A stretch of 62,384 nucleotides of DNA, counting the filler, from Dimorphilus gyrociliatus (Eukaryota; Animalia; Annelida), in NCBI GenBank assembly GCA_904063045.1. It is 3 parts of 3 records of this genome, joined end to end, with 100 filler letters (N's around TTAATTAATTAA, not from the genome) between each part and the next. Parts side by side here need not be neighbours in the genome. Positions count along the whole stretch, not along the records: positions 30,367 to 61,190 come from CAJFCJ010000135.1; 2 more parts are not named here. One strand, 5' to 3'. The position numbers and the translations under genes were made by a program. The notes under the pieces are model-generated. The model saw nothing but the letters and a program-made list of their open reading frames with translations. It was not told where the DNA came from and searched no databases. Shown piece by piece: positions 34,931 to 59,573 of the stretch (within the stretch, counting starts at the first letter, position 1; every line of letters starts with the position of its first letter).

Positions 34931-35589
34931 TGTACTTTGTTGTATTGTAATTGTAGGAATTTCTGCTTCTTCAGAACAGTATTCGTCCTTTCCAATCATT
35001 TATCAATTTACCAAAGTACTCAAACAAATAGAACCTTTCAAATTCGTCCACAAGTAGTCTTAAAAAATGTAATTTTGGTAGAAATTAATCAACAAAATAC
35101 CAGTATTTCGTTTAAAGAATATGTATTGAGTAAATGAGTTTCTAGTTCTAAACAAGTAAGTTTAAACAACCAGTTAATGGTTAAAGAACTGAACTGACAA
35201 GCTGGGGAAATGCATTTCCAAAGCTTGGGTTCAAGTGGTCAAAGGATTACAAAGTTGAAATCTGACAGTCTCATAATTCTCATGTAACAAAAATATGAAA
35301 AACTGTTATATCACACATATAAAATATAATCCTAAGATTAGGGCCACATGCTAAACACATGCCACTGCAAACAGGCCTGCCTCATCAGCATCTGGTGTTT
35401 GACCTGCATCTTTTCCATGTTCTTTGTTCTTTTGTTAATTGCCAAGTAGCCAACATCTGTTACAGTCAAAGAGTCTATTTCTTACAAAATAGAGTTCTTT
35501 CTAAATTACTAAAAGCTAACACTACGAAGTAAAAGTCTTTCTAAAGTTCCACCACTATAATCCCTACAAAATATAAGTATTTCTATAGT
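34931..35589. repeat. ~650-bp dispersed repeat, second copy at 40915-41571 (direct orientation)
   Basis: High identity by eye. Fragments also at about 39875-39918 (inverted), 48538-48608 and 60650-60712. Confidence 0.88.
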
Positions 35590-35771
35590 CAGGTTAATGG
35601 ATTCTAAATTCATCAAGAAAGAAACCACTGGCTTAGTATTTTGTTCCAAATACACCATTTAAATAAAAATATTGATAAAGAAGCCATTGTTAAATGGGTT
35701 TAGATTCTACTATAGCCAGTGAAAGTGAAGTAATCAGTGACAAATTCAATGAAACACAAAAGTTCATGTTC

Positions 35772-38069
35772 TTATTTTGTAGTGACTGTCAAATGTTCAT
35801 TATCATAGCGTCCAAGCAACTCATCATCTATTTTACAATCTCGAACAATTACTTCAATATGATGTAAATTGTTAAGTGAAGTCATGAGTCCATCAAAAAT
35901 TTTCTCCATTTCAATATATGGATTCCCATGTAAGTTTACTTTTTTTATGCTACTGCAATATTTCAACATTTCTCCAATGGCTGTAGAGTCAGTTTTAGCT
36001 AGTCCACAATGCTTAAAATTTATCTGTCTTAAACTCTTTTGTGACGTTGAAAGTCCAGTACAAATGTTTGCTATTCCATTCCCTATTGTATTGTTTCCTA
36101 GATGTAATACTTCCAAAACATTACAACTATTTAACATATCTCCAATTTGATTGCCATGTTCCTGTGTTAAGTTACAACTACTAAAATCAAGGTGTTTTAA
36201 AGTGTTTGATAATTTCCTGAGTCCATTGCAAATGTCCAAAAGTCCATTTCCCATTTTGTCATTAAAAGATAAGTTGATTACCTCTATTTTAGTACAGTTA
36301 TTGAACAATTTTTCAATAAATTTGCATTGATCCTCTTCAATTTTGCAACTGTTAAGTTGTATTTTTTTCAAGCTACTTGATGATGCTTCAAGACCTTGAC
36401 AAATTTCCATTAAACCGCCATCTCCTAAGTTATTATATCTCAAGTCAATCACTTCTATTTTACACAACTTTGACAATATCTTTCCAAGATTAATTGCTGA
36501 ATCATTTTGTAGTGAACAAAATGGAAGTTCAATGCATTTTAATGTAAGTGGTAAGTTTTTAATTGTGTTAAAAATTGTATGTCCATCAGTCCATGAAAAG
36601 TTGATCCTTTCCATTTCATTACAGTTTTTCAACAACTTTCCAATATGTTCACCGTTTAAGACACATTCGTAAAAGTTAATATCTTTTAAGGTATTTGATG
36701 AATTTTCAAGTCCTTCGCAAATTTGTGGAAATCCTTTGTCTATTGACACATTTCCACTTAAATTGATTATTTCTATTTTCTTACAATTTTTCAGTAAGTT
36801 TTCAATTATATTAACTTTTGTTTCATCAGTTATATGAAGATCAGAGATATCACAACATGCAAGTTGTATATTTTTCAATGTTTCTGATGATTTTATTAGC
36901 CCATTACAAATCTTGGAAAGTCCCTTTCCCATCTCCGTATTGAGAGACAAGTTGATTTCTTCCATTTTAGTGCAATGATTGAGCAATCCTCCAATTTGTT
37001 CACATTGATCTTCAGTGATTTCGCAATCATCAAGTTGTATATTTTTCAAAGCTGTTGATGATTTTTCAAGATATTTACATATTTCAGATAAACCATCATT
37101 TCCCATTTTAGGGTTTTTTGTTAACACGACTTTTTCTATCTTAGAACACAAATTTAGTATATTTCCAATTTTTTTACATTCATCCTCAGTGAGTTCGCAT
37201 GCTTCAAAGGCTATACTTGTAAGTGTTTCTGATGATTGTTGAAGTAAACTACATACATTTGATAATGCATTTTTTAAATTTGTATTGTGTGACATATCAA
37301 TTTCTGTTATGTTGTTATAATCATTTTTTAACTCTATCAACTCTTCCTGATAAAGTTTCTTTGCTAAAGAGCCTTGACTATGCACAATAGATATTGAATA
37401 TTTATTCATATCAAAATTTTCTGTAGTAAATTTAACTTTGATATTTTCATTTTTTAATATATGTATTTTAGGTTTCCTTTTAAAATATTCATACATTTTT
37501 TCACTTGTATACTGCTTAGAGTTTTCTCTTATAAACTTCTTTCGATCCAAAACAGCACTTTGTAATCGATTTTTGATTAATTGGAAATCTTCTCTTATTA
37601 ATCTTATATAATTCTCTTCGAATTCTTCAATGTTGTCTAGATTGTTTTTTTCATTTTTGTCTTCTTCTTTTTCCATACTCGAAGGATCCTCAACTATCTT
37701 TTTTGTCATTGTTGAAATATCACAAACAGTATGCCATTTTTCAATGCATTTAGAGCAAAGATCTTCCTTTTCATGTTCCTTGCAATAAAACATGGCCTCT
37801 CTTTTATGGTCAGCACAACTATTTTCTATGACCATTATATTTTCTTCATCAAAAAAGAAAGGCTTTTTTAAATCTTCTATTTTGTTTGCTTCTATATTTC
37901 TACATGAAGGACAAGTCAATGGAATTCGAAGGTTATTCAAACAATCCCTGCAAAATATATGCAGACATTGAAGAATCCTTGGGTGATTTCTCAACCATGA
38001 TCCGTAACAAACAGTACATTTGACAGCATCCTCCTGAAAACCAAGTACTTCAAAATTCTGGTTACTCAT
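35772..38069 (-). CDS. Intronless RING - B-box - (coiled coil) - ribonuclease-inhibitor-type LRR protein, intact copy
   Basis: C3HC4 RING (CTVC...CLHIFCRDC...CPSC), B-box (CADH...CKEH...CSKC...H..C), then paired 28/29-aa LRRs. Likely ATG at 38069. Confidence 0.9.
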   Translation of the reverse strand: MSNQNFEVLGFQEDAVKCTVCYGSWLRNHPRILQCLHIFCRDCLNNLRIPLTCPSCRNIEANKIEDLKKPFFFDEENIMVIENSCADHKREAMFYCKEHEKEDLCSKCIEKWHTVCDISTMTKKIVEDPSSMEKEEDKNEKNNLDNIEEFEENYIRLIREDFQLIKNRLQSAVLDRKKFIRENSKQYTSEKMYEYFKRKPKIHILKNENIKVKFTTENFDMNKYSISIVHSQGSLAKKLYQEELIELKNDYNNITEIDMSHNTNLKNALSNVCSLLQQSSETLTSIAFEACELTEDECKKIGNILNLCSKIEKVVLTKNPKMGNDGLSEICKYLEKSSTALKNIQLDDCEITEDQCEQIGGLLNHCTKMEEINLSLNTEMGKGLSKICNGLIKSSETLKNIQLACCDISDLHITDETKVNIIENLLKNCKKIEIINLSGNVSIDKGFPQICEGLENSSNTLKDINFYECVLNGEHIGKLLKNCNEMERINFSWTDGHTIFNTIKNLPLTLKCIELPFCSLQNDSAINLGKILSKLCKIEVIDLRYNNLGDGGLMEICQGLEASSSSLKKIQLNSCKIEEDQCKFIEKLFNNCTKIEVINLSFNDKMGNGLLDICNGLRKLSNTLKHLDFSSCNLTQEHGNQIGDMLNSCNVLEVLHLGNNTIGNGIANICTGLSTSQKSLRQINFKHCGLAKTDSTAIGEMLKYCSSIKKVNLHGNPYIEMEKIFDGLMTSLNNLHHIEVIVRDCKIDDELLGRYDNEHLTVTTK

Positions 38070-38590
38070 ATCAATTGGAAAGGAAAACCAAAGAGCAGTA
38101 TTCACTCAAATTATCCGTTTCTGTTTACTGTAATTACCATAGTGAAAAGGTTATATTTTTCAATTATAACCTTATAACCACCTATGCCAAACTATCAGTA
38201 TGACCTAGTTAGAAACTTATTTTTCTCAGTACATATTCTTAGGACAAAATACTGCTATTTTGTTGATCAACAATAAAGAACAATAGGCAGCTGATATTGT
38301 ATTTAAATAAAAACCTTTAATAAGCAAAAAATGCATTCAAATATTAATACAATCACATCTTTTTAAATGTAAATTGTGAATGTAATGTGTTAGTTAACTG
38401 CGAAATTTTTTGGTTGTTTAGGAGTTATTACACTTTCATATTAAACGAAACAACATTTATTGTTATTTCTTTTTTACAATTCAACAAAATTAGTTTGATT
38501 ATTAACTTTAAGAACACCAAATTTCTAAAAAATTTTTGAGGGATTCAATGGTTTTGATTCAAATAGCAATTATGGCACAGTTCCAGAATA

Positions 38591-38697
38591 GGGGTGAAAC
38601 TGTACCCGGGTGAAACCGTACCCGAGTGAAACCATACCCATGCCGGGTGAAACCATACCTGAGTGAAACCGTACCCATGCTGGGTGAAACTGGACCC
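38591..38697. repeat. Six tandem G(G/A)GTGAAACCRTACCC units (mirror at 42770-42876; short copy near 34780)
   Basis: Directly visible 16-20-nt units followed by the same ATAAAAATATTAGGTTTTTT flank, typical of a transposon subterminal array. Confidence 0.8.
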
Positions 38698-39037
38698 ATA
38701 AAAATATTAGGTTTTTTTAATTTTATTATTTAGAATTATAATAATGGAACCTACAAAAATAAAAAGACTGTTGAAATATAAACTGACAGCCATTTTAAAA
38801 ATGAAGAAACTGAAGTTAACTTTCACTTTGGAAAGAATTTAATTTGAAAGTCAAGCTTTTTTTGATAATTATATTTGGGCAAAGATTATCATTTTAGATT
38901 TAACTACTTTCAGATGAATGTTTCATTCTTCAGAGTGTCAGAAACATGACTGGTATGTCACAGCCTGAGAAGATAACAATTGATTTTGAGATGGGTCTGT
39001 GGAGAGCTGTATCCAAAATATAGCCAGAATCACTGTT

Positions 39038-42000
39038 CAGACAGAAAACGTCCCCAACAGAAAACATCCCCAAACAGACAGAAAACGTCCCCAAAAATAA
39101 ATTGTCAAAAAAGTTGAAAAAAATTTAAAAAATTTTTACAATGATGGTATAGAAAGATATAGTCTTTTTTGATATATGTCATTATTTCAGCAAAAAAAAA
39201 CAGATTAAATCTATTGGAATTCTTTTCATCAATGATTAGTTTGTTTGCTATTCTTATTCACTTCACTTTTTTAATGATTAACCGATTTTGAGAGATAATT
39301 GATCTATTGGGTATTTTTGTCGTTCATTCATTTTTAATTAAGTTTTTAGGAAAATTGATCACGTGATTCTTTTCAGTCATTGAAAACACCTTATCAATAC
39401 TACTCAACTATCTTCGAAATATTTACTTATTCATGATTGTACTCCAAGTTAGTGTGAAAGATAGAGGAGAAGAGTAAAAAATGACAGACCCATCAACATT
39501 CACTGTTCTATATAGACTAAGAAAGAGACTCAAGACTAAAAGAAGAAGTAGACTTTTCCCTTGTTGGTATTGTATACATTGTAAAACTTGGAAAAACTCT
39601 CTCAGTTATTGATATTTTTTTGTTGACACCATATTCCAAAAAATTGCCTATTTACTTTATAATCTTTGTTTCTCTGTGGGTTCAATTTTAAAGATTATTG
39701 TCCTATAATATATAAAACATTCAAAAATCTTTCAACTAGGCCTACAATGTTTAAGAACATTTATTTCAATATTAAAACTACTATAATACTACAATTGTGC
39801 AAAAACTATACAATAGAAATAAAGAAAGTTTGTCCTTAAAAAAATCATCCACTAGATGGCACTAATTGAATGTGCTTGTTTAGAACTAGAAGTTCATTTT
39901 ACTCAATACATATTCTTTGGAAAAGGTATATGTATTACTGGTTGAGAGAAATATGCTCTGGAAAAGGTTGTTTGCAATGGCTGTGAAGACAGATATTCCG
40001 TATCATCAAATAAACAGTACTGTTTCCAGTGTCCTCACAACTGCAAAGAATGTTCACCAGACATTCAGAATGTTATGAAATTTACTCAATGCAATGACAT
40101 GACATGTATTTTTGAATGATGGTAGCAGAACATTTGTTAGATTTATTTCAAACTGAGCAAATCCATGTTGTAGTAGCTTTTCTTTTGATTTTAACATTAA
40201 AGGTATATCCATTATAGATTAAAATGTCTTTTCCTTTCTGACTTGCTTTTGGTAAAATTTTAAAATGACATTTGTCTGTGTCATTTTTGGTTTGATCAAT
40301 ATCACTTTCAAAAGACCCTTCCTGCACATCAGAGATTTCTCCACCAGTGACTGTAGTCAGTGTACTTATTTCAATTTCATTACTGAACATAATATCCTCC
40401 TCATTCACAACACTTTGAACTCCTTTTGAACAATCAGCAATGCTTTCCATGCTCTCAAAAGAAAATGATAATCTCAACTCCTCTCTGGATTCATTTATGC
40501 TTTGTTCTTTTTCTTCATCTATTCTCTTCAAGATTACAACACAATTTCTTTTTGAGATTTGAAAGCAACTTAAACATAATGGTGAATTTGATGCTGGATC
40601 TGGATTATTTGAATGATTGATATTTTAAAGGCATAAATAATACAAACCCTGAATGCACTTTATATGGCATGTTTTGAAACAAAGATAACATTTGCCTTTA
40701 ATTTGGCTGCCTATGAAGGCATCATTGCAGATATAGCATGTGTTTTCCATTATTGAAAAATTGAGAATATTCTTTTTCAAACCTTGCCAAGTAATAATTT
40801 GTTAGAGTAAAATTGATAAGAAAAGTCAAAATGATTGGATGATATATATTTAAAAGTTGATAATAAGATTACCACAAGCATTACAAGGTAAAAATCACAT
40901 TAAAAGATAAAAATTGTACTTTGTTGTATTGTAATTGTAGGAATTTCTGCTTCTTCAGAACAGTATTCGTCCTTTCCAATCATTTATCAATTTACCAAAG
41001 TACTGGTCCAATTAGAACCTTTCAAGTTTGTCCACAAATAGTCTTAACAAATGTAATTTCGGTAGAAATAATTCAACAAAATGCCAGTATTTCATTTAAA
41101 GAATATGTATTGAGTAAATGAGTTTCTAGTTCTAAACAAGTAAGTTTAAATAACCAGTTAATGGTTAAAGAACTGAACTGACAAGCTGAGGAAATGCATT
41201 TCCTTTTATACATTTCCCAAAGCTTGGGTTCAAGTGGTCAAAGGATTACAAAGTTGAAATCTGATGGTCTCATAATTCTCATGTAACAAAAATATGAAAA
41301 ACTGTTATATCACACATATAAAATATAATCCTTAGATTAGGGCCACATGTCAAACAGGCCTGCCTCATCAGCATCTGGTGTTTGACCTGCATCTTTTCCA
41401 TGTTCTTTGTTCCTTTGTTAATTGCCAAGTAGCCAACATCTGTTACAGTCAAGAGTCTATTTCTTTTGAAATAGAGTTCTTTCTAAAGTACTAAAAGCTA
41501 ACACTACGAAATAAAAGTCTTTCTAAAGTGTCACCACTATAATTCCTACAAAATATAAGTATTTCTATAGTTGCACCAGTCTAATTCTTAAAAAATAGAA
41601 GTGTTTCTAATGTACCCTTATATCTAAAGTCTGGGGCCGACAGAAAACATCCCCAAGTGAGATTTTTGAAAGCAACATTTCGGATTGAAAAATGGTTAGT
41701 GTGAGTGAAGTAGCCATTGATTTGTAGTTAGGGGGGTTCCTTCTAAGGGTCAGGGGTAATCAAAAAGGTTAGGGAGTGACAAGGGCTAGGTTAGGGTTAG
41801 TGTTAAATGCATTTGGGGACGTTTTCTGTTGTAACCCTGAAGTCTAAGTATTGATATATCATTATATCTAAGTGCACAAGAATGAACTTAATATTGTCAA
41901 TTTTTTGGTTAGGATGATATATAAACTTTTGATTATAAAAATCCTTTGTAGTGTTAAAAAATTAATATAATAATAAAGCTTTGAAAATAATAAATAATAA

Positions 42001-42429
42001 ATTTTCACATTACCTCTAATGAGTGATAATAAAGAAGGAAGTAGAATTTTTCTGTCTTACTGCCTGAAGATTTCCAATTGTTTTTAGGAGCATTTATTTT
42101 GAATTTGTGAAATATTGTAAAAAATTTTATATTATTTTGTGCAGATATTTTTTAATTAACATAGCCTGTTCTTCTGTCTGCAATAAGGGATTTTCTCTAA
42201 GCTTGTGGATGTTTTCTGTCACTTTGAGGACGTTTTCTGTTCTTTAGTTTATTTTATATAATTCTGTTTTTTTTTGCTGAAATAATGACATATATCAAAA
42301 AAGACTATATCTTTCTATACCATCATTGTAAAAATTTTTTAAATTTTTTTCAACTTTTTTGACAATTTATTTTTGGGGACGTTTTCTGTCTGTTTGGGGA
42401 TGTTTTCTGTTGGGGACGTTTTCTGTCTG
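39038..42429 (-). mobile_element. Internally deleted Mutator-like element at the centre of the inverted duplication
   Basis: Inward-facing CAGAAAACGTCCCCAA arrays at both ends. A broken PHD finger (MENTCYIC...CHIKC...CLSC from 40750) and a FLYWCH finger (GKDILIYNGYTF...WICSV*NKSNKCSAT) lie inside. Confidence 0.7.
41638..41831. mobile_element. Complete ~190-bp MITE with CAGAAAACRTCCCCAA TIRs and internal TTAGGG-like hexamers
   Basis: Starts CGACAGAAAACATCCCCAA and ends TTGGGGACGTTTTCTGTTG. The TIR motif matches the MULE terminal arrays. Confidence 0.75.
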
Positions 42430-43397
42430 AACAGTGATTCTGGCTATATTTTGGATACAGCTCTCCACAGACCCATCTCAAAATCAATTGTTATCTTCTC
42501 AGGCTGTGACATACCAGTCATGTTTCTGACACTCTGAAGAATGAAACATTCATCTGAAAGTAGTTAAATCTAAAATGATAATCTTTGCCCAAATATAATT
42601 ATCAAAAAAAGCTTGACTTTCAAATTAAATTCTTTCCAAAGTGAAAGTTAACTTCAGTTTCTTCATTTTTAAAATGGCTGTCAGTTTATATTTCAACAGT
42701 CTTTTTATTTTTGTAGGTTCCATTATTATAATTCTAAATAATAAAATTAAAAAAACCTAATATTTTTATGGGTCCAGTTTCACCCAGCATGGGTACGGTT
42801 TCACTCAGGTATGGTTTCACCCGGCATGGGTATGGTTTCACTCGGGTACGGTTTCACCCGGGTACAGTTTCACCCCTATTCTGGAACTGTGCCATAATTG
42901 CTATTTGAATCAAAACCATTGAATCCCTCAAAAATTTTTTAGAAATTTGGTGTTCTTAAAGTTAATAATCAAACTAATTTTGTTGAATTGTAAAAAAGAA
43001 ATAACAATAAATGTTGTTTCGTTTAATATGAAAGTGTAATAACTCCTAAACAACCAAAAAATTTCGCAGTTAACTAACACATTACATTCACAATTTACAT
43101 TTAAAAAGATGTGATTGTATTAATATTTGAATGCATTTTTTGCTTATTAAAGGTTTTTATTTAAATACAATATCAGCTGCCTATTGTTCTTTATTGTTGA
43201 TCAACAAAATAGCAGTATTTTGTCCTAAGAATATGTACTGAGAAAAATAAGTTTCTAACTAGGTCATACTGATAGTTTGGCATAGGTGGTTATAAGGTTA
43301 TAATTGAAAAATATAACCTTTTCACTATGGTAATTACAGTAAACAGAAACGGATAATTTGAGTGAATACTGCTCTTTGGTTTTCCTTTCCAATTGAT

Positions 43398-45694
43398 ATG
43401 AGTAACCAGAATTTTGAAGTACTTGGTTTTCAGGAGGATGCTGTCAAATGTACTGTTTGTTACGGATCATGGTTGAGAAATCACCCAAGGATTCTTCAAT
43501 GTCTGCATATATTTTGCAGGGATTGTTTGAATAACCTTCGAATTCCATTGACTTGTCCTTCATGTAGAAATATAGAAGCAAACAAAATAGAAGATTTAAA
43601 AAAGCCTTTCTTTTTTGATGAAGAAAATATAATGGTCATAGAAAATAGTTGTGCTGACCATAAAAGAGAGGCCATGTTTTATTGCAAGGAACATGAAAAG
43701 GAAGATCTTTGCTCTAAATGCATTGAAAAATGGCATACTGTTTGTGATATTTCAACAATGACAAAAAAGATAGTTGAGGATCCTTCGAGTATGGAAAAAG
43801 AAGAAGACAAAAATGAAAAAAACAATCTAGACAACATTGAAGAATTCGAAGAGAATTATATAAGATTAATAAGAGAAGATTTCCAATTAATCAAAAATCG
43901 ATTACAAAGTGCTGTTTTGGATCGAAAGAAGTTTATAAGAGAAAACTCTAAGCAGTATACAAGTGAAAAAATGTATGAATATTTTAAAAGGAAACCTAAA
44001 ATACATATATTAAAAAATGAAAATATCAAAGTTAAATTTACTACAGAAAATTTTGATATGAATAAATATTCAATATCTATTGTGCATAGTCAAGGCTCTT
44101 TAGCAAAGAAACTTTATCAGGAAGAGTTGATAGAGTTAAAAAATGATTATAACAACATAACAGAAATTGATATGTCACACAATACAAATTTAAAAAATGC
44201 ATTATCAAATGTATGTAGTTTACTTCAACAATCATCAGAAACACTTACAAGTATAGCCTTTGAAGCATGCGAACTCACTGAGGATGAATGTAAAAAAATT
44301 GGAAATATACTAAATTTGTGTTCTAAGATAGAAAAAGTCGTGTTAACAAAAAACCCTAAAATGGGAAATGATGGTTTATCTGAAATATGTAAATATCTTG
44401 AAAAATCATCAACAGCTTTGAAAAATATACAACTTGATGATTGCGAAATCACTGAAGATCAATGTGAACAAATTGGAGGATTGCTCAATCATTGCACTAA
44501 AATGGAAGAAATCAACTTGTCTCTCAATACGGAGATGGGAAAGGGACTTTCCAAGATTTGTAATGGGCTAATAAAATCATCAGAAACATTGAAAAATATA
44601 CAACTTGCATGTTGTGATATCTCTGATCTTCATATAACTGATGAAACAAAAGTTAATATAATTGAAAACTTACTGAAAAATTGTAAGAAAATAGAAATAA
44701 TCAATTTAAGTGGAAATGTGTCAATAGACAAAGGATTTCCACAAATTTGCGAAGGACTTGAAAATTCATCAAATACCTTAAAAGATATTAACTTTTACGA
44801 ATGTGTCTTAAACGGTGAACATATTGGAAAGTTGTTGAAAAACTGTAATGAAATGGAAAGGATCAACTTTTCATGGACTGATGGACATACAATTTTAACA
44901 CAATTAAAAACTTACCACTTACATTAAAATGCATTGAACTTCCATTTTGTTCACTACAAAATGATTCAGCAATTAATCTTGGAAAGATATTGTCAAAGTT
45001 GTGTAAAATAGAAGTGATTGACTTGAGATATAATAACTTAGGAGATGGCGGTTTAATGGAAATTTGTCAAGGTCTTGAAGCATCATCAAGTAGCTTGAAA
45101 AAAATACAACTTAACAGTTGCAAAATTGAAGAGGATCAATGCAAATTTATTGAAAAATTGTTCAATAACTGTACTAAAATAGAGGTAATCAACTTATCTT
45201 TTAATGACAAAATGGGAAATGGACTTTTGGACATTTGCAATGGACTCAGGAAATTATCAAACACTTTAAAACACCTTGATTTTAGTAGTTGTAACTTAAC
45301 ACAGGAACATGGCAATCAAATTGGAGATATGTTAAATAGTTGTAATGTTTTGGAAGTATTACATCTAGGAAACAATACAATAGGGAATGGAATAGCAAAC
45401 ATTTGTACTGGACTTTCAACGTCACAAAAGAGTTTAAGACAGATAAATTTTAAGCATTGTGGACTAGCTAAAACTGACTCTACAGCCATTGGAGAAATGT
45501 TGAAATATTGCAGTAGCATAAAAAAAGTAAACTTACATGGGAATCCATATATTGAAATGGAGAAAATTTTTGATGGACTCATGACTTCACTTAACAATTT
45601 ACATCATATTGAAGTAATTGTTCGAGATTGTAAAATAGATGATGAGTTGCTTGGACGCTATGATAATGAACATTTGACAGTCACTACAAAATAA
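43398..45694 (+). pseudogene. Second RING-B-box-LRR copy with a 1-bp deletion in a T run near 44893 (real or sequencing error)
   Basis: Identical protein to the copy at 35772-38069 up to GHTI. Here AATTTTAAC has 4 T versus 5 in the other copy. Confidence 0.88.
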
Positions 45695-45877
45695 GAACAT
45701 GAACTTTTGTGTTTCATTGAATTTGTCACTGATTACTTCACTTTCACTGGCTATAGTAGAATCTAAACCCATTTAACAATGGCTTCTTTATCAATATTTT
45801 TATTTAAATGGTGTATTTGGAACAAAATACTAAGCCAGTGGTTTCTTTCTTGATGAATTTAGAATCCATTAACCTGA

Positions 45878-46748: not shown

Positions 46749-47423
46749 ATGAACAAAACTAGCAGTAAAACTGTACAAAATGGTTTTCTAAATATTTGTA
46801 AAGGGCTTAAAAAATCATCAAAAACATTAAAGCATATTGCATTTAACAAATGCTGCTTAGAATCAAAAGAATGTATGAATTTGAAAAAACTTTTAAAAAA
46901 GTGTTCAAAAATTGAGACAGTTGATTTATCAGAGAATCACATAGTGGATGATGGATTTATTGATATTTGTAAAGGGGTAAAAAAATCATCAAAAACATTA
47001 AAGCATATTGCTTTTAACAGATGCTGCTTAAAATCGAAAGAATGTATGGATTTGGGAAATGTATTGAAAAAATGCTCTAAAATAGAAACAATAAGTTTAT
47101 CGGGCAACGCAACAATGGCCAATGGATTTTATTATATTTGTGCGGGACTTCAACAGTCAAAAGATACCTTAATTCATATTGCTTTAAAAGACTGCTACTT
47201 GAGTTCTCAACAATGTAGAATATTGACAAAACTTCTGGCAAAATGTTCAAAGATAGAAATATTAGATTTATCCTGGAATGTCCTATTGGTAAGTGTATTT
47301 CTTAATACTTTGGAAGGACACGAACAAACAGCTGGAACACTGAAGTTGACAAATTTTTGCCATTCTTTTTTGAAAACGGAAGAATGTTCAGACTTTGGGA
47401 TTTTTCTGAAAAAAATGTTCTAA
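46749..47423 (+). pseudogene. LRR-only paralog of the RING-B-box-LRR family
   Basis: Same ICxGLxxSSxTLKxIxL...CSKIExIxLS repeat. No RING/B-box is seen upstream, and the ORF ends with a frameshift. Confidence 0.7.
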
Positions 47424-48478: not shown

Positions 48479-48792
48479 CATCCCTCCACAAATAGTCCTA
48501 AGAAATGTAATTTAAGTAGAAATTAAGGAACAATATGCCAGTATTTTATTTAAAGGATATGTATTGAGTAAATGAGTTTCTAGTTCTAAACAAGTAAGTT
48601 TAAACAAGCTCCTTGTCCTGCATATATATCACAAAAAGGATCAAAATTCATTGTAAAAAATGAAAGTCATCTTCATACTTGCTTTAGAAAATTTGGTTTT
48701 TGTATTATGGATAGGCCTTAACCCTAACCCTAACACTGTACCAGGAGAAATGGCTAAAGTTTTATTCAGCATTGATGTATACCCCAAATCTC

Positions 48793-51700
48793 CTAATAAA
48801 GAGCTGTACCACTGTAAGAAACATTCATTTGTTGCTCTCCTCTAAAACTGTTTTTTAGTTTATCGTGGAAATCTATCCATCCCTGTTCTTGCAGTTTTGT
48901 CTGAAGCCTTGCTAAAAGCTGTTCTTCCCTCTCTACTAAATTATTGAAATGTTGAAGTTCCATCCAAATATAATTCCTAATTTCTGCTAAGATAGAGAAA
49001 CGTTCCAAAAATGGTTCAGAAGGTTCTCCATAATTATTAGGGTATCTCAAAAGGCTTCCATCCCCAATAACACTAATAAACAGTTTAAAAATATGTGTTT
49101 GATTCCCTTCACTTGCCATTTCTGAAAGAATTGCATCTGTAACCAAGTTAAATCTATATTGGCAAGGATTTATGATTTTAAACAGTTTGTTATCTTTTGC
49201 CATATTCAGAAAAATTTGTTCTCTATCATCAGTACTTCCTTGAAACTGTAAAATGTTAAGGCAATGTTCCGGAATTTCCCAAGTAAAAAGCAATGGCTTA
49301 ACTGAATGAAAATTACTATTTTCATTTCTCCATCGTATGGTAAAGTTTGTTGGATTTAGTGATTCAATAAATATTTTACCATCCCTAGTGCAAGACTCTA
49401 CTGTAATTCTTCTCTCAATTTTCTCATTGACATTGACATTAAATTCTTTCATAAATGATTGTGGTACAAAGCATGTATCGAATTGATTATTCTGAAAAAG
49501 TCAAATCATCATATCATTTCATATTCATATTTTAATAAACAATTTTTTCTTTACCTGAATTTGTGGTGAAATTCTTAAAATCAGCTTTTCTTCATCAGCT
49601 TTGTCACCATAAACATAGAACTTTATGACATTTTTTCCTTCCTTATTGACAATGATATATTCGCTGAAACCAGTAATAGGGATTTCTATAAAGCTAGTAT
49701 CCCAAATCACATTTTCAACTTTTTGCAGACATTTATCATGTTTATGATAAACAAAAACACGTTTAGGGCTTGAAGACAGAAATGGAATCTTTAGAATGCA
49801 GTCTTTATTGAATTTTTGTCCATCTGGTTTACATATTAGATGTTTAATAAATATTTGACCATCACTTCCTTTTCTAATATTTTCCATATTAGGAATTGCT
49901 TCGCCATCTTTGTAGATTTTCTCTTGTAATGAAATCTCTACTGGAGAATTTGTTGCATTGTCAGGAATACTTAGTTGAGCAAATGGACATTTTAAAGTAG
50001 TTGATATTCTATCATACCAACAATGAAAAGTAGGATTTTCAAGTAGATCTTTATTCAAATCGATATTAATACTTTTAAAATTATCCACTGACGATTTCAA
50101 TAGGTTTATTGATAGTTTTGATGAATCTTGTGAGCTGTCTGATCCGCTACTGCTGTACTTGGGAATATGAAATTTGTATTGAAACCTTTCCACTAATGAT
50201 AGATCAAGGCGAGTTCTATCAATTGTGATTTCTTCCGTATCATATTCTTCATTAGATATTTGCCGATTGATTGAAAAGACTAAGTTTTCAGCAGTACTCG
50301 GTACTTTAAAACTACGAATGGCTATGATGTTGGATAATTGCATATTTTCTGTACAAAGGCGAAACATTAATTTCCCCTTAATAGAATCCTTTTCCTCAAC
50401 AATTGATTCATTTGTAACAAATAAGAAGACTCTAATTTCACACCTGGTCTTTTTTAATGTAAATGTTTCTTTTGACTGGAAGAAGTGAATTATTGGGATA
50501 AGGTCAGTTGTGGATTGAAGTTTTATACCAATACCAATCATCTCGTGCAACTTGTCTTCAGTTTGACAAGTGACAGTAATATTCTGACAGTTTTGTTGAC
50601 ATTCACTTTTGATGTCAACTGTTAGATTGTTTGTTGTTGATTTTAAATTTAAATTGTATAGGAAAAGTCCAGATGAATCTCGAAATATTCCAATATTTTT
50701 TGCTAAATTAATTTTCAGCGGAACTTTTAGAAGTTTTCCTGTTTGATTATCCATCTTGGAGGGTTGTACTTTTTCCGGAATAGTAGGTGATGCATTCTCT
50801 AAGAGGGCTTTAAAAAAGAATAATTATTGTATTATTAAGGTTGAGACTTGAAAAAAAGGACAAAATGTAAGAAAGATAATGAAAAACAAAACTTATAGCT
50901 ACATGATTAAGTACTATACTTTGATCAACAATATACAAATTTAATCTCTTTTACATAATCGGGCACTCATCAAAGCATATATACAAGACATATGCTGAGA
51001 AAAATTATTGTACGGATGCGACAGAAAACGTCCACAAATCAGTGCTTTTACCCTAACCCTAACCCAGCCCTTAGCTGTGCCTAACCTTTTGCATTAGCCC
51101 TAACCCTTAGAAGAGACCCTCCTAAGTACAAATCAGTTGCTGTCTTCTTCTTCATGAAAACAGTAACATTGAAAGAACCCCCTCACATTCATATTTGATT
51201 TCTATGTTTCCAGGTTCAGGTAAAATCAAATCTGTAAATATAACAGAGAATTTTCCAACAGTTTCACTATTTTTTAAGCACTTTACCAATAGGCTCAATC
51301 CTTTCACGTTCAGATAAAGTAGGTGTATGCTCATCTGTAAATAAAACAGAGAATTTTTCAACAGTTTGCCTCTTATACAGTCACAGACAACATTTTTCAT
51401 GTAATATCTTTTTTTTTGATCATTTTTTCCAATTTATATCCCTTTAACTAATCAAAATAGCTGTGTTTAATATAAAAAGAACATTGGAAATTCATTAGGG
51501 TTTCATAAGGAAGAAATGGAAATTTTGTTGAAAAAAGAGAGTAAGATTTTATTAATTAAGTATTTTCTGCATATAACCTATATTTTGTAGGAAAATGAAA
51601 ATGGTTTTAAATGTTAAGGGTTAAAAAAGGTATGACACAATATTTTTTGTGTTAGGTTAGGGTTAGACTGTATTTCAATTTTAACCTATCAAGCCTTCAG

Positions 51701-52623
51701 TCTGAGGTACATGTGCTAAAGTAAAAGAAAGAAGTATGTCATTGTTAAAAAATGAAAAAATAGAGGAATTAAATAACCTTCTCCACCTTCTTCCATCATT
51801 AAAGTTTCAGAACGTTTACACCTGAACAGATCTGTTAGTTTAACAAATATTCTTTATTATTATTCAATTGCTGTTTTTAGTTCAATTCTAATAATTTACC
51901 TTTCCCTTTCCTATAACAGAAAATTAAAAGAGCCATAAAAGCCACAAAAAATATCACGAAAATTACAATGGTTAAAGTTTGATAAAAGTTTGTTGCTGTT
52001 GAATTAAAAAGATGAAAAGGAGAGGAGTTAGGTTAAGGAACAGACAAGGGCTAGGTTAGGGTTAGGGTTAAACTGTGCATTTGGGGACATTTTCTGTTGT
52101 ATCTGTAAGAATATATTCAACTTACATGATTCATTATTGCTGTTTCCCACTTGTAGGCATTTGTTTAAATCCATTCGATATCTGTAATTGCTTTTTGTAC
52201 AACTGCACAAGGTGTCTTCCCTTGAATTTCCCTCTTTGAGGACAGTCTCAAATAATCCATTACAAAGTCGTCTATTTTATCAATTGAACAATAAAATCTA
52301 TTTGTATTTACACAGCTTTGTTTTACAAACCTTTTGCTACATTTTTGAATTAGCCAGTAAGATTTAGATACTCCGTCAACAAAGATTCTACTTCCATTTT
52401 TGTCATTGAAATATCCTGGTTTACATTCTCTGCATAAATTGACAATACTGTTCTCGCAGCTTGATGGTTCAAAACCTACATCACAGACTATTTGTTGGCA
52501 ATTTCCTATTGTTGTTGAATTGTGTTCTAAAAAATTGGCTGCTGCTGATTGAAGATGAATTATTACTACATCTGTCCATAGTAAAACAATAGAGACTTTC
52601 CAATGTAATAAACTAGACATCAT
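48793..52623 (-). CDS. Receptor A: signal peptide, TNFR-like cysteine-rich ectodomain, TM, ZU5, UPA, death-domain-like C-terminus (multi-exon)
   Basis: Exons splice in phase (introns 52272-52330 and 49492-49554). CRD C..GF...C......C..C.PG.FND...C...C...DT.C.C. TM IVIFVIFFVAFMALLIFCY followed by RK. ZU5 LICKPDGQKFNKDCILKIPF...ITGFSEY. Confidence 0.8.
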
Positions 52624-53655
52624 ATTTTGGAAGGGAAGGAGGAATTACTGTTGCTAATTATAACCATTGAATTTTATGGTTATTTTTGAACGGAAGTGAC
52701 AATTACTAAGATTCAATTCAGTGGTTATAATTCAATGTTAAGGGAGCATATATTGTACTTTGTTGTAAGATATGTATTGAATATTCTGAGCTTTTATCTC
52801 TAAGCAAGAGGTTAGAAAACTAAGCTAACAACTGTTAAATTCTAAGGGTTTATATACTTTCCCAAGAGTTTAACAGTTCACAATTTCAAAGTTTGAACAA
52901 TGCAAAGTAACATTTTAACACAATTGAAAGTTCTAAAAATGGTTCCACCTTTAATTGATTTCATTCATCCTGAGTAATTAGGTCAGATAAATTTAGATGG
53001 TCAGCTTCTTTGTAAGATGTAGCAATTTTGGTAACATTCAATTCAACCATTGAAAGTGAGAAATTGGAACTGGTCCAAAAGTCAACAATAGTTGAGTTTG
53101 ACCTTTTGATACTCTTTAGCTGGCAACTAAATAAATGTTCTTAAGTGATTAAAGTAAGACTAATGTAGTTCTATAGTTGATGCTAAATTCGTTGCATTTG
53201 TTTTGCAAGAATTTTATATGCTCATGTGCGTACCTGCATTGCGGCATCCATGTATAATAGAATTGTGCTTATCCAGCGCACAATGCTATTGTTAAGTATT
53301 CATATAAAATAGTATTGAATTAAGTCTATGGTTTTCTAAAAGAGCATCTATATCGAACTGAAGTGCACATATATTATCCTTATAAATATTATTTTATTCT
53401 ATTGAAAGACAATTCAACTGCATCTTACAATAGAATTTTAGCTGTAAAAAGGTTATTCATAAATTTCAAAAAATAATCTCTTATAACTTTTTAATAACCA
53501 TATTTCCTGGTTAAGAATAGTATAGTTCTTATCAGCTTATTGATTTTAAGATTGTTGTATTACACAAATCATTTTTTGTTTATTTTTATATATGGTAAAT
53601 TCTAAAGGTGAACAGCTAAAAAAGTACTTTAAGCCTAGATGAAACTAATTTCTTT

Positions 53656-56600
53656 TTAGTAAATACTCTGATTTATGCTAGAATTTGTTGAATATGTTTG
53701 AGACAGATTGTCTTCAATGAAAGAAAGTTGAGTTGGCGTGCTATTTTTTCTCACCAATTCACATTCTCTCTCCAATAGACTTTGTAAAATAAAAAGTCTC
53801 TCCTCGACAAAATATCCATTTAACTCTTGAATAACACGTCTCTCTCTCATTTCTGAATTTTCAATATTGCAACATTTCATCCAAATATAACTTCTAACTT
53901 CCTTTAAACAAATAACACGTCCCTGCCTTGAATTAGACACTTTTTTAGAATATGCCATTTTAAATGCATTTCCATTTGCAAAAATAGAAATGTATAGTTT
54001 AAAAATTTCTGCTTCAGAGCTATGATCTACCATTTTGTAAAGAGTACTATTAGTAATAATTTGGAAATTATGGCCTCTTTTATTCCTGTGAGCAAAAGAC
54101 TCAAGTGGTCTCTGCCATTTTAGTAATATTGTCTGACTATCTCCAGTACTTTCTTCAAATTTAATTGAAAGATTACACATAGCTGGTCTTTTATAAATTA
54201 TCTTTGTAAAATGGGTTGGCATAATGGCATGGCAACCAGTATCATTTTGAACATTAATATTAAATATTGTATTTTCGGATTCAATATCCTGTTCTTCAAC
54301 TGAATGTGCAGGAAGTAATTTCAACTTTATTTCAATAGTCTTTTCAAAATTTATATTAAACTCTTTAAAAAAACATTCAGGAGAAATACACTTGCCAAAT
54401 TGATTATTCTGAAGAAAAAAGAAAAAATGAAAAGCTATAATATTGATATTATTATTGAAATAAAATATATAAAATATTTACCGGATGTTGTGGAATTATT
54501 CTTAAAATTGCGCAATTATCATCAACTTTATCACCATAAACATAAAATTTCAGGCGATCTATGCTTTCTTCATTAACTATAATATATTCATTGAAGCTGT
54601 TCAATGAAATTTTTATATAAGTCTTATGCCATTCAGAAATTTCCACTTTCTCATATTTTCCCTTTTCCTTATGATATACGCAAATATTTTCTTTACTTGA
54701 AGACAGGAATGGAATTCTAAGTGAACACATCTTTCTAAACCTTTGTCCATCAGATCTACAAACTATAGATTTAACAAACATTTGTTTCTTAGTCCTACAT
54801 TGTCCTTTCAACTCTGCAATTTTGCAAATAGCTTTGTCGGTTGTCCAGATTTCATCTTTTAATGAAATCTTTACAGGAGTTTCTGTTGCATTTTCAGGAA
54901 AACTTAATTCAGCGAAAGGACACTTTAAGACCATTGACATTCTATCATACCAACAATAAAAGGTAGGACTTTGAAAAAAATCCTTGTTCAGGTCAATGAA
55001 AATAGTTTCTAAAGTTTGCAATGAGGATTTTGGTTGTACCATAGACACATTTAAAGAGCCCAGTGAAGCGTATGAAATGTCAGAAGTAGACTCATCAATA
55101 GAAAATTCATAGTCAAAATTCAATGCTAAAGAGATATCCAGATGAGTTCTACAAAGAGTGATGCTATTTACTTTTTCTTTTCCAGTAGATGTTTGCAGTT
55201 GGAGAGAAAAGTGTAAATTTTCCTCTTCTTTAGACAATTCAAATTGACGAATGACTATAACATTTGAAGTAGGCTTTTTCATTCTTTCTGTTAATAGTGT
55301 GAAAGTTAAGTGGCCATCAATGCAATTATCTGTTACAATGGCCTTTTTCCTTGTAACAAAAAGAAAAACTGGTATATCAACAAGAGTGTGTGTAAAAGTT
55401 ATTGCTGGATTGTAAGCAAAGGAGCATTTAGTTTCGTAACCATTTCCAAATTTTTGAACTCGTACCCCAATACCAATTTTTTCCTTGAGCTTTCTATCAT
55501 GTTTACCTATAAGAGTAATTAGTTGGGAATCTTGATTAAAGAGGCTTTTGATGTAAATTTTCAGCATAACTGGATGAGAATACGAATTAAAATTATATAA
55601 AAAAATTCCAGACAAATGTTGAAATATTCCAATATTGTCTTTTAAATTTATTTCCAATGGATTATTGTTTTCTTCAAGCTTTGTTGTTGGACTGAATATG
55701 TTAGATGAAGAAAGCCTTTGTTCAATTGTAGGCGTAATGTGGGGATAGGATGTTGCTGTGTAGAAAGTAAAATTGGTGTGAAATCTAAACATAAAGATTT
55801 CGAGAAATAAACCTGTAATCTTATCTTTGTAGCTTAAGCTATTTGGCTCATAGTCCAAGTCCTAAAAAGAAATTTAGATATAGTTTAGAAGAGAAATAGT
55901 GTGGTTTTGCCTTTTTTGAACAGTGGAAAAGGGTTGAAATGTGATGTTTATCTATTGTTAGGAACATTACCTTTTTTCTGATTTCAAGTCCAAGTTGAGC
56001 TAAAAAAAAAGATGTTTATGGTAGTTAATCATTGAATTATTTATCAATATTCAAAGTGAAACCTCGAGAAACTATTCCGCCAAAATGGAAATCTGAATAT
56101 TTAACACTAAAGTTGCAAATATCTGAAATGAAAGCAATGAAAAACTGATGTTGAAAAGACCTCTTAAAACAGACAATGAACTCACCTTTCCACTTTCTGT
56201 TCTTGTAAATTAGGACCATAAATAAGATACAAGAAACACAAAAAGTAATAAAGAATATAATGAAAATATACTGATAAACATCTGTTCATAGAAAATTCAA
56301 AATGTTAATGTTTAAAAAGGAGGATATTAACAAACTTTTTGAACTATCCTTTTTTGAACATTCTTCTCGATCCATTCTATAGATATAATTATTTTGTGAG
56401 CAGTGACATATAGTATTTCTCATGTAATTTCCTTCTTTTAAGACAACTTGGAATCTCCCGGAACATTTTCGTCTAGTGTTTTTTTTTTTATTATTGTAAA
56501 AAATCATACTTGACTATTCAAATTTAATTTTTAAACCTTTTCCGACATCCTTTGGTAAGCCAGTAGGGATTTCCTTCATTTTTTATAAAAATTCTACTGC

Positions 56601-56826
56601 CTCGCTTATCGTTAAAGCTTCCGGGCTTACATTTTATGCAAGAGTCACCAGAATCATTTCCAATGCAAGGAGATGGCTCATAACCAATTTTGCAGACAAT
56701 TTCTGTGCAGTTGTGATCAGTTTTGTTTTCCAGACGAAAATTTGTTGCTAATGGTAAATATCTTGTTGTAATCTGAACCATTAGGCCAAATAGGAGAAGA
56801 AGGTGATAAGCTGAGTGAGAAATCAT
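53656..56826 (-). CDS. Receptor B: paralog of receptor A with the same architecture
   Basis: ATG at 56826. About 9 exons with phase-consistent GT-AG introns (e.g. 54409-54481, at the same position as in A). TM YIFIIFFITFCVSCILFMVLIY followed by KNRK. ZU5 IVCRSDGQRFRKMCSLRIPF. Confidence 0.82.
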
Positions 56827-57238: not shown

Positions 57239-58526
57239 CAGTGGTGAAAGAAATTTTTCGTTCTATGGAATATTTTTTTGTAAGGGCTATTTTGAAGGGT
57301 AATCAATGGCCTTGTTTTAAAAAAATATTGACTAAAATGTAGGAAATTTTGTCTAGTTTTATGAATAGTTTTCAGATACTCTTTACCTCTCCTAGTTTAC
57401 AAATTTTTTGTATATTTTTGTGAGTATGTATAATTCCGTACAGAAATTTTTTGGAAAAGGCAAGCAAATTTTTCATACACCCCCTATATCTTATTTATTT
57501 AATAATTTTTTAATTAAACATACATTTAGAAATATTAGTAGTTTAGTTTCAAGCCATTTTGTTGAATGCAAGTTAATCCTCGCTTTAACAGGGACTTATG
57601 AAGGATGATTAAATCCTTCTTCTGTTTTTTATTCAAAATTTCCAATTTTTGTTGAATACAGTACAACAAATTATCCTTTTTAGTAAATTGGGGGCCGTCA
57701 TATACAAGATTCTTCAACATGTGCCATGCATTCTCTATGGGGGAAAGGTCTGCGGAGTAAGCTGGCCAAGGTAATATTTTGCACCTTTCAGCCTTAAAAT
57801 ATTTTAGGATAATTTTGGCTTGTGGTAAGGAGCATTATCCTGTTGGAAGATGAAACTCTTCCCATATCTTCTTTTCAGGAATGGCATGACCTCTTTTTTC
57901 AAAAAAACCAAGTATCATTCCTTTGTGCACTTTATTTTGATCCTGGAAATGTGCAAGAACCCATCTGGCCCTATACATCCCCAGATCATTACTCCTCCAC
58001 CACCCAATGGATGCTTTGTTCTTAGATTTTCTGTTTCTGGGTTGAACTGCCATGTTTGGAAATTGTCTGGCCCGTCTAAGCTGAATCTACATTCATCAGA
58101 TACAATTGTTTTGTTCAAGTCAAATTTATTTTCAAACCAGCCTCTACACATTTCTACTCGTCTTAGTCTATTTTTCTTCTTTAGTGGGGGATTTTGAGGG
58201 ATTTTTTTAAATTTCCCTCCCATTTCTTTTAGGGCTTTCTGTATGGTGGTCTTTGATACCATTAAGTTGCACTTGGATGTCAACTTTGTACTTGTAACCC
58301 TTTGTTTCTCCTCTTTCATCTTATTAATCTCCCTCTTCATGATGGTTCTGTCTCTTTTCGAAAGGGAGCTTGGTCTCCCTACGCCTCTGCTTTTTTGGTA
58401 TGATGGCTTCAGAATGTATTGAACAGAAGATTTTGGAATTTTCAATAATTCTGAAATCTCTCCATAGGATAATCCTTCTTCATGTTTTCTCTTGATTAAC
58501 GCCTTAATTTCTTGACCATATGCCAT
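57239..58526 (-). mobile_element. Degenerate Tc1 element (transposase 58526 to about 57535, frameshifted; only one terminus recognised)
   Basis: HTH, IVSDECRFSLDGPD, VMIWGCI, FQQDNAPYH and WPAYSADLSPIE. TA-CAGTGG end at 57239. Confidence 0.8.
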
Positions 58527-59573
58527 ATTCAAATTTTATTTTTGATACTGGCCTATTAATATTATGCAAAGTAAAGAGTTTATAGAATTGTGTCAAGAGA
58601 ATTTCCAGACTCAAGTAATATACAGTCATTTTTTTTGGTCTTTTTCGTTTCTGTAAAGTCATCCATTTTCTTCCGGTTAAAAATTTCCTAAACAATTTAA
58701 CTCTGAATATGAAATTCTCATATATCTTTTAGGTTTAACACTTTTTATCTATGCAATTCAAAAAAATAGGATTTTAAATACAGTCCGCGACAGAAATATC
58801 CATATATGAAAAAAAAATAATTTTTTGATAAAAGAGCTTTTTTTTAAATATTTGTTGAAGAATTTGTCTGAAATTGAAATTTGGTTTCAGTTTGCTTTAA
58901 AAAAATATTTTTATACTAAAAAAAAATTTTTTAATTGAATGTTTAATAATCTTAAAAAAGAACAGAAAAATAGTGTGCCAAAAATATCCATATATCATCA
59001 ATTAACTAGTTTGGTTCCATTTTCTTGGTTACATTTCTATATTTTGTATTAATATAAGAGTTATTTTCCTATCCTGTCACCTTTGTTGGCAATATCTCAT
59101 TCTTATAGATATTTGACTAAAACTTCTCACAGACTTTTATAGATCTTTTAACATTCTTCAATTTACTTTTATGACAAACATAATTGCAGCTTTTTCTCAA
59201 AATGGTTAAGGAAAGGAAAATGTATCTTTACATTCTTTCATTGGTGAGTTTGTGGCATGTTCCCACAGGCTCCTCCATGTATTGTATTTATAATGTAAGA
59301 ATTTTTTCACAGGATTCATTTGTAGTTGGTAGAAGTTATTCAGAACTCAGATCTTAGTGTCTAGTTCAACTTTTGTTATAACCTAACATAACCCTAACCC
59401 TAACCCTACAGAGGAAGGAACATAGAATCCGATTCTAGGTCTTCTTTTGATACATTTTTGACAGGCTATAACTTTGATAGTTATCTCATCCATCAACTCC
59501 TTGCATTGAGTTTCCATTTCCATTTCTTTATCTAATTCTTCTGATGTAGTTTCAGTCTCTTCTTCAGATGAAT

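Follow-up and report, generated by a model that had tools for sequence, protein, structure and literature searches.

The receptors UNC5A-D are type-I membrane proteins in which an Ig-Ig-TSP1-TSP1 ectodomain is followed, on the cytoplasmic side, by a ZU5 domain that does not cleave itself and then by UPA and a death domain. The death receptors of the TNFR superfamily (TNFRSF: TNFR1, Fas, DR6, p75NTR and EDAR) combine a signal peptide, several cysteine-rich modules in a ladder and one transmembrane helix with a bare death domain or TRAF motifs. ZU5 is also found in the cytosolic proteins PIDD1, UNC5CL and NLRP1/CARD8 (as part of FIIND), where it is followed by UPA and a helical end, and in ankyrins, where the order is ZU5-ZU5-UPA-death domain. 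Here we describe two genes, g1 and g2, which lie in tandem on the minus strand at positions 48793-56826 of an AT-rich (G+C about 30%) stretch of DNA from the annelid Dimorphilus gyrociliatus; the whole stretch analysed (62,384 nucleotides (nt), filler included) is called the window below, and coordinates refer to it unless a locus is named. It is probable that g1 and g2 are duplicated receptors that consist of a signal peptide, a ten-cysteine TNFR-like ectodomain, a transmembrane helix, a juxtamembrane stretch, an orphan beta-rich domain, a ZU5 domain and a tail in the position of UPA and a death fold; gene structure, expression, topology, the ZU5 fold, the absence of the cleavage motif and the narrow distribution are the firm parts of this description. 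What is new is the combination of domains, since the individual modules are known, and no report of a TNFR-ZU5 fusion was found in the searchable, incomplete literature.

Like UNC5A-D, g1 and g2 encode type-I receptors with a cytoplasmic ZU5 domain that is not self-cleaving, and their tail occupies the position of UPA and the death domain in UNC5. They differ from UNC5 in that the ectodomain is a short cysteine-rich module of about 115 amino acids (aa), with no Pfam match to Ig or TSP1 in the family, in that an extra orphan beta-rich region of about 220 aa precedes ZU5, and in that UPA and a death domain cannot be demonstrated; at the sequence level, orthology with UNC5 was not found. With the TNFRSF death receptors they share the signal peptide, the single transmembrane helix and, putatively, the ladder of cysteine-rich modules, and in structural searches the ectodomain model comes closest to these receptors; g1, moreover, has a splice form that lacks the transmembrane helix. 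However, the TNFR_c6 signature is absent, the modules number only about 2.5 and contain an unusual insert of 27 residues, and the cytoplasmic part is about 700 aa long and contains ZU5. PIDD1, UNC5CL and the FIIND of NLRP1/CARD8 resemble g1 and g2 in having the ZU5 fold followed by a segment in the UPA position and a helical end, and both PIDD-like and FIIND/UPA-FIIND clusters appear among the shape and language-model neighbours of the family, but g1 and g2 are membrane-anchored rather than cytosolic and no LRR, NACHT or CARD was detected in them. Ankyrins provide the best match to the ZU5 fold, although g1 and g2 have neither ankyrin repeats nor a known spectrin-binding context.

Gene structure and expression

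Gene g1 (52623-48793) has nine exons (52623-52331, 52271-52126, 51995-51900, 51831-51778, 51715-51686, 51334-51287, 51231-51187, 50807-49555 and 49491-48793), which splice in frame into an uninterrupted coding sequence of 2664 nt for a protein of 887 aa. Gene g2 (56826-53656) has eight (56826-56537, 56472-56336, 56281-56186, 56122-56063, 55999-55970, 55860-55813, 55755-54482 and 54408-53656), with an equally uninterrupted coding sequence of 2688 nt for 895 aa; its ATG is at 56826, and 48793 is the final base of the g1 stop codon. The introns are short, mostly 54-73 nt, and the median intron of D. gyrociliatus is 66 bp (PMC7854359). Shared intron positions, which an earlier note on this DNA had reported for the two genes, are found for exons 1-3 and for the last intron.

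Transcript evidence comes from contigs of the only public run that contains this region (X1, 2017), which behaves as a transcriptome and whose contigs match the DNA at 99% identity or more; the comparison covers 50600-56599, and plus-strand CT..AC skips in it correspond to minus-strand GT..AG introns. Fourteen such GT..AG joints fall exactly at g1 and g2 exon borders. All seven junctions of g2 are present: the six upstream ones, which lead from exon 1 via the transmembrane exon into the beginning of the big exon, all have the same contig depth (71.7), exon 2 is covered by an 858-nt contig record, and the last intron (54408/54482) is spanned by a separate 1852-nt contig reaching 53340, so that the 3' untranslated region extends to about this position. 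In g1, GT..AG joints are found at six of the eight junctions (52331/52271, 52126/51995, 51900/51831, 51778/51715, 51287/51231 and 51187/50807), and a continuous chain of joints leads from exon 1 to 50807. The junction 51686/51334 is absent among the contig matches listed, and a 409-nt contig crosses this intron (intron 5) unspliced; the junction 49555/49491 was not seen and lies outside the compared region. At both, the splice sites are canonical (GT..AG) and the reading frame is preserved.

Thus g1 and g2 are expressed genes, and in both of them the ectodomain and transmembrane exons are spliced to the large cytoplasmic exon. The earlier note had predicted two paralogous multi-exon genes at these coordinates that can be spliced in phase, which both script splicing and the transcript joints bear out, and it had named separate genes for the ectodomain/transmembrane and ZU5 exons as a finding that would speak against it; the transcripts join these exons in both genes. 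Exon 2 had been drawn too short in it: the true acceptors at 52271 (g1) and 56472 (g2) add one conserved cysteine.

A further g1 transcript joint, 51831 to 52126, skips the 96-nt transmembrane exon in frame at a depth of 57, compared with 47 for the joints that include it. Its product would be an isoform without the transmembrane helix that keeps the signal peptide and the whole tail. Splice forms of this kind are known for several TNFRs.

Membrane topology and the ZU5 domain

Both proteins begin with a hydrophobic N-terminus (signal peptide) and contain exactly one strongly hydrophobic 19-aa window, which is encoded by the 96-nt transmembrane exon (51900..51995 in g1, where the Kyte-Doolittle maximum is 3.2, and 56186..56281 in g2), and the type-I topology with a single transmembrane helix proposed in the earlier note is supported. 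The mature ectodomain is encoded by exons 1 and 2 (52126..52536 in g1, aa 30-146, with the motif C-RE-C-KPGYF; 56337..56748 in g2) and has ten cysteines with a nearly fixed spacing, 4-8-7/8-2-27-5-18-1-13, in g1, g2 and the annotated paralog P0001 (DgyrCDS14866, 842 aa, locus L001); g1 and g2 differ at a single gap, which is 7 in the former and 8 in the latter. On the other side of the membrane, the juxtamembrane stretch is encoded by small exons and is variable, with 21% identity between g1 and g2.

The ZU5 domain occupies 49636..50070 in g1 (aa 484-628) and 54563..55003 in g2 (aa 472-618), on the minus strand like all features of the two genes, with 50% identity between the two. Pfam ZU5 (PF00791, gathering score 21 bits) matches four of the five paralogs at the homologous place, over profile positions 20 to about 90, with expect values (E) of 0.0035-0.2 and with scores that are all below the gathering score: 18.0 bits in g1 (E 0.0035), 14.3 in the second annotated paralog P0002 (DgyrCDS14392, 437 aa, locus L002), 14.1 in a second copy at L001, 12.4 in P0001 and no match in g2. 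For structural comparisons the contiguous P0001 was modelled in place of the spliced g1 and g2; the cytoplasmic AlphaFold model covers P0001:190-842 and was built from an 8-row alignment, with a mean predicted local distance difference test score (pLDDT) of 40, and within it the ZU5 region (model residues 266-384) has moderate confidence (pLDDT 53-67). The top 17 Foldseek matches in the PDB are all ZU5 proteins (ankyrin-R, ankyrin-B, ankyrin-G and UNC5b; E 7e-4 to 1.5e-2). VIA-align superimposes model residues 254-387 on ankyrin ZU5 (3kbu and 3f59) with Z 9.4-9.8 and a root-mean-square deviation of 2.9-3.0 Å over 117-118 residues, on the NLRP1 FIIND with Z 7.5 and on UNC5b (3g5b) with Z 7.0 and 3.4 Å over 122 residues; the next matches are GAIN subdomains, with Z 8.2-8.7, and a variety of sandwiches that bind sugars. 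A PDB-sequence profile search with the whole cytoplasmic part returned no ZU5, UPA or death-domain chain, and its ACT-domain match (IlvN, E 0.086) was rejected because the model is all-beta there. The Pfam and structural comparisons support the presence of a genuine ZU5 domain with the expected beta-sandwich fold, and the sequence motifs quoted for the tail in the earlier note are all present in g1 and g2.

Self-cleavage of ZU5 in PIDD, UNC5CL and FIIND requires a His-Phe-Ser (HFS) motif at the last ZU5 strand. This motif is not kept in any of the five paralogs, where the domain ends in TGFSEY (g1), NSFNEY (g2), TDFNEY (P0001), NSFSEY (P0002) and NSFCEY (the L001 copy), i.e., HFS is replaced by GFS, SFN, DFN, SFS or SFC. 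Since the motif is absent, self-cleavage is not expected, and ZU5-gated signalling by autoproteolysis, which the earlier note had suggested looking for, is unlikely as judged from these sequences.

Between the juxtamembrane stretch and ZU5 lies the beta-rich domain (50071..50733 in g1, aa 263-483; 39% identity between g1 and g2), for which the AlphaFold2 model of the paralog predicts strands with pLDDT 52-74 and for which no relatives were found in Pfam, the PDB or the ESM Atlas. A direct search for a second ZU5 at this place did not yield one: comparison with the ZU5 family sub-alignment by hhalign gave P of about 0.5, and an Atlas feature search gave no usable match. Chains with the tandem ZU5A-ZU5B of ankyrin align over model residues 25-387 with Z 10.4, compared with 9.8 for a single ZU5, and this small gain is a hint that the beta-rich domain could be a second ZU5-like sandwich.

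Family distribution and evolution

When a profile of the big exon was searched exhaustively with HMMER against 1.84 billion representative proteins, the only relatives to emerge were P0001 and P0002, both from the same D. gyrociliatus assembly (GCA_904063045.1), and searches for homologues with P0001 and with the exon 8 alignment returned nothing beyond these two. The proteins of g1 and g2 themselves are in none of the public protein collections searched, which is of consequence for annotation. In agreement with the lineage-specific family suggested by the earlier note, the receptors are thus restricted, so far, to D. gyrociliatus or close relatives of it, and all known members of the family come from a single organism.

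P0001 shares the complete architecture of g1 and g2. At L002 8759-11381, the model of P0002 is truncated at its 5' end: its big-exon open reading frame (ORF) begins at L002 9335, and signal-peptide/ectodomain exons of the family lie upstream of it at L002 8759-9043 and 9111-9215. The P0001 locus is a rearranged local cluster of family fragments, with a stop-ridden remnant of a g2-like ectodomain exon (L001 9511-9744), a partial g2-like copy in which ZU5 is intact and which has no clear 5' end (L001 13583-15121), and a pair of ectodomain exons on the opposite, minus strand (L001 15991-15579). In the flanks of the pair within the window, no further copies were significant when family hidden Markov models (HMMs) were run against six-frame ORFs. 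Four minus-strand ORFs of 236, 170, 139 and 142 aa at 32071-34363 have no Pfam match, and one of them contains 'CIDCKPDG', which recalls the ZU5 motif of the family; the family HMMs miss these ORFs (E 0.096 in a tiny database), and they were not accepted as members.

Divergence is uneven along the protein. The identity between g1 and g2 is 51% in the ectodomain and 50% in ZU5 and falls to 36% in the UPA-like stretch and 23% at the helical end, while among paralogs it ranges over 27-36% and 23-31% in the last two regions. The ratio of non-synonymous to synonymous divergence (dN/dS; NG86, per-exon codon alignments) is 0.19-0.37 for the ectodomain, 0.29-0.43 for ZU5 and 0.6-0.9 for the tail, the last value being derived from near-saturated and poorly alignable sequence and to be read with caution. 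Over exons 1-8, g1 and P0001 are close (dS 0.29-0.41, 68-82% aa identity in the exon pieces compared), whereas in the last exon (48796-49491 compared with L001 12077-12754) they are as far apart as the other pairs (dS 0.8-1.0, 26-34% aa identity). This mosaic suggests that the tail exon was exchanged between paralogs or has had a separate history.

Alternative readings of the ectodomain and the tail

The earlier note called the ectodomain a TNFR ectodomain, and this assignment finds weak support. The ectodomain model (P0001:22-136) was compared by three structural searches. About 47 of 50 Foldseek rows in the PDB are TNFRSF proteins (E 0.16-3); the top ten VIA-align matches among 48,161 chains are all TNFRSF (Z 3.2-3.6), followed from rank 11 on by the cysteine-rich domains of Eph receptors (EphA2/EphB2), CaSR and the sweet-taste receptor, with Z falling from 3.2 to 2.2; and seven of ten ESM Atlas rows belong to TNFR_c6 clusters (TM-score 0.40-0.47). 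In a PDB-sequence profile search, the second half of the ectodomain matches the TNFR ELR1 at E 0.042, and the motifs at the junctions, C-x2-C-xxG-[YF] and (D/N)T-x-C-x-C, resemble those of TNFRs. (An NKCC1 match at E 0.014 in the ectodomain profile search was taken as chance.) Several results weigh against a TNFR assignment. Pfam TNFR_c6 (PF00020) does not match exon 1 of g1 or g2 or P0001:1-140 even at E 5, the PROSITE TNFR pattern PS00652, applied as a regular expression, is matched by none of g1, g2 and P0001, each TNFRSF match is non-significant when taken singly (Foldseek E of at least 0.16, Z 3.2-3.6, TM-scores below 0.5), and the model itself is middling (pLDDT 62). The only sub-threshold Pfam matches in the ectodomain are to laminin-type EGF, on the C-x2-C-xPGYF stretch (EGF_LMN_ATRN, E 0.0013; EGF_laminin, E 0.0068), and a laminin-EGF module of perlecan matches at E 0.31. 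Together with the Eph, CaSR and sweet-taste receptor neighbours these matches fit a protein whose ectodomain is a small, generic stalk rich in cysteines, of a laminin-EGF, ephrin-receptor or NCD3G kind, i.e., an orphan ZU5 receptor with no link to TNF, an explanation that has a substantial chance of being correct but that we rank lower, given that TNFRSF dominates three independent structural searches and stands above Eph and CaSR. Because these searches are mutually consistent, even though none is significant alone, our preferred reading of the modelled ectodomain, by a modest margin, is about 2.5 divergent cysteine-rich modules of the TNFR type.

For the tail of about 255 aa, which evolves fast, the question is whether UPA and a death fold are present at all. 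In g1 it consists of a UPA-like stretch (49147..49635, aa 629-770, containing the 63-nt intron 49492-49554) and a mostly helical C-terminal part (48796..49146, aa 771-887, with the conserved motif EIRNYIW); in g2 the two together occupy 53659..54562, which holds the 73-nt intron 54409-54481. The UPA and death domain that the earlier note had read in this tail were not confirmed. Isolated tails of four paralogs have no Pfam match to UPA (PF17217/PF23679), UPA-FIIND, Death (PF00531) or CARD (PF00619) at E 10, no UPA or death-domain chain appears in PDB-sequence profile searches (a UTP20 match was taken as chance), the UPA-like stretch of the P0001 model has pLDDT below 35, and the near-neutral dN/dS of the tail is unusual for a death domain that binds adaptors. 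More generally, no domain of the family exceeds its curated Pfam threshold, and the cytoplasmic model as a whole is poor. A tail that is simply a lineage-specific diverging region with some other helical end, whose likeness to death-domain helices is a matter of chance, would be compatible with these negatives and with the low paralog identity, and it comes close to being an even choice. Language-model neighbours, which by the calibration of the method are leads only, point the other way: P0001 residues 440-842 are placed next to ZU5-UPA-Death and FIIND clusters (0.85-0.89), and when ZU5 is left out (580-842) all of the matches listed are UPA clusters with CARD or Death (0.76-0.80), although scores of up to 0.80 are attained by one third of shuffled proteins. 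The top whole-model shape in the ESM Atlas is a PIDD-like LRR-ZU5-Death cluster (model residues 126-624, TM-score 0.30), and the helical end, with its conserved motif [IL]R[NS]Y[IL]W, is modelled as seven helical segments (about six to seven helices) over about 110 aa (pLDDT 50-58). To our knowledge, in every characterised protein with ZU5 so placed (UNC5, ankyrin, PIDD, NLRP1 and CARD8) UPA and a death-fold domain come next. From position and from the language-model and shape leads, UPA and a death fold in the tail are thus plausible, if unproven.

It could also be supposed that g1 and g2 are decaying duplicates or mis-joined models, with the ectodomain/transmembrane and ZU5 exons in separate or non-functional units. 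The absence of the two proteins from public collections, the unspliced contig across g1 intron 5 and the pseudogenised fragments at related loci (the stops at L001 9511-9744 and the partial copy at 13583-15121) would agree with this. Against it, both coding sequences are intact over about 2.7 kb, six g2 joints at one depth connect exon 1 to the big exon and the g1 chain of joints does likewise, dN/dS is well below 1 in the ectodomain and ZU5, and the annotated P0001 has the same full architecture, which makes this explanation very improbable.

Possible mode of action

If g1 and g2 are tandem receptors with a TNFR-like ectodomain and a ZU5-containing cytoplasmic part, then an extracellular ligand, which need not be TNF, may cluster their ectodomains, and the uncleaved ZU5 together with the tail may act as an intramolecular switch of the UNC5 kind or as a docking platform, rather than as a self-cleaving module of the PIDD or NLRP1 kind. 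The output would probably be immune or cell-death signalling because of the local duplication, the rapid divergence of the tail and the expansions of neighbouring LRR genes. The earlier note had inferred, more specifically, sensing of a TNF-type ligand and a death or NF-kB output, and for this family both are inferences. The broadest view, which we regard as rather doubtful, is that this is the first family to fuse a TNFR-type ectodomain to a complete, non-cleaving ZU5-UPA-death-fold supramodule: the designs of TNFR and of UNC5/PIDD would then have been merged in one receptor, invented and locally amplified in a single miniature annelid lineage as a sensor for immunity or cell fate, with the last exon, for UPA and the death fold, exchanged among paralogs. 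If our reading of the family holds, a single small lineage can assemble a new receptor design from existing signalling modules, despite a conservatively compacted genome, and the family would be a natural test of whether a TNFR-type ectodomain can drive a ZU5-based switch.

Genomic neighbourhood

The few expanded gene families of D. gyrociliatus are mostly locally duplicated immune genes (PMC7854359); TNF, ZU5 and the gene ids of the present family are not mentioned in the genome paper and the supplements of it that were searched (PMC7854359). In the window, g1 and g2 are flanked by genes with RING and ribonuclease-inhibitor (RNI)-type leucine-rich repeats (LRRs), and LRR genes are also near both other loci of the family. 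Shared repeats (84-95% identity) agree, as do the X1 contigs, with the origin of the window in D. gyrociliatus or a very close relative. A 3.6-kb inverted duplicate (35589-39204 and 42263-45877) has 99.97% identity between its arms, each of which carries an ORF with RING and RNI-type LRRs; the ORF is 777 aa long on the minus strand (35772-38105) and is split in the plus-strand copy (43362-44927 and 44990-45694). Either a very recent duplication or an artefact of the assembly could account for it. A further LRR ORF is found at 46749-47423.

Short interstitial runs similar to TTAGGG, in both orientations, are present in the introns and flanks of g1 (about 52040-52075, 51650-51672, 51050-51110 and 48715-48735), and at two of them contig depth rises sharply, to 2441 (51000-51199) and 1015 (52000-52199); these runs are probably part of a dispersed repeat that is transcribed. 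In the g2-g1 spacer, 52802 and 53273 are connected by a contig; the ends are not those of an intron (AG..AT), and seven other letters stand in between. This is probably a 470-bp indel, perhaps a repeat element, that distinguishes the window from the source of the transcripts. Just upstream of g2, on the minus strand at 57915-58532, is a remnant of a Tc1/mariner-type transposase (HTH_Tnp_Tc3_2, E 9e-8), and a minus-strand ORF at 40148-40531 has a FLYWCH zinc finger (E 3e-5).

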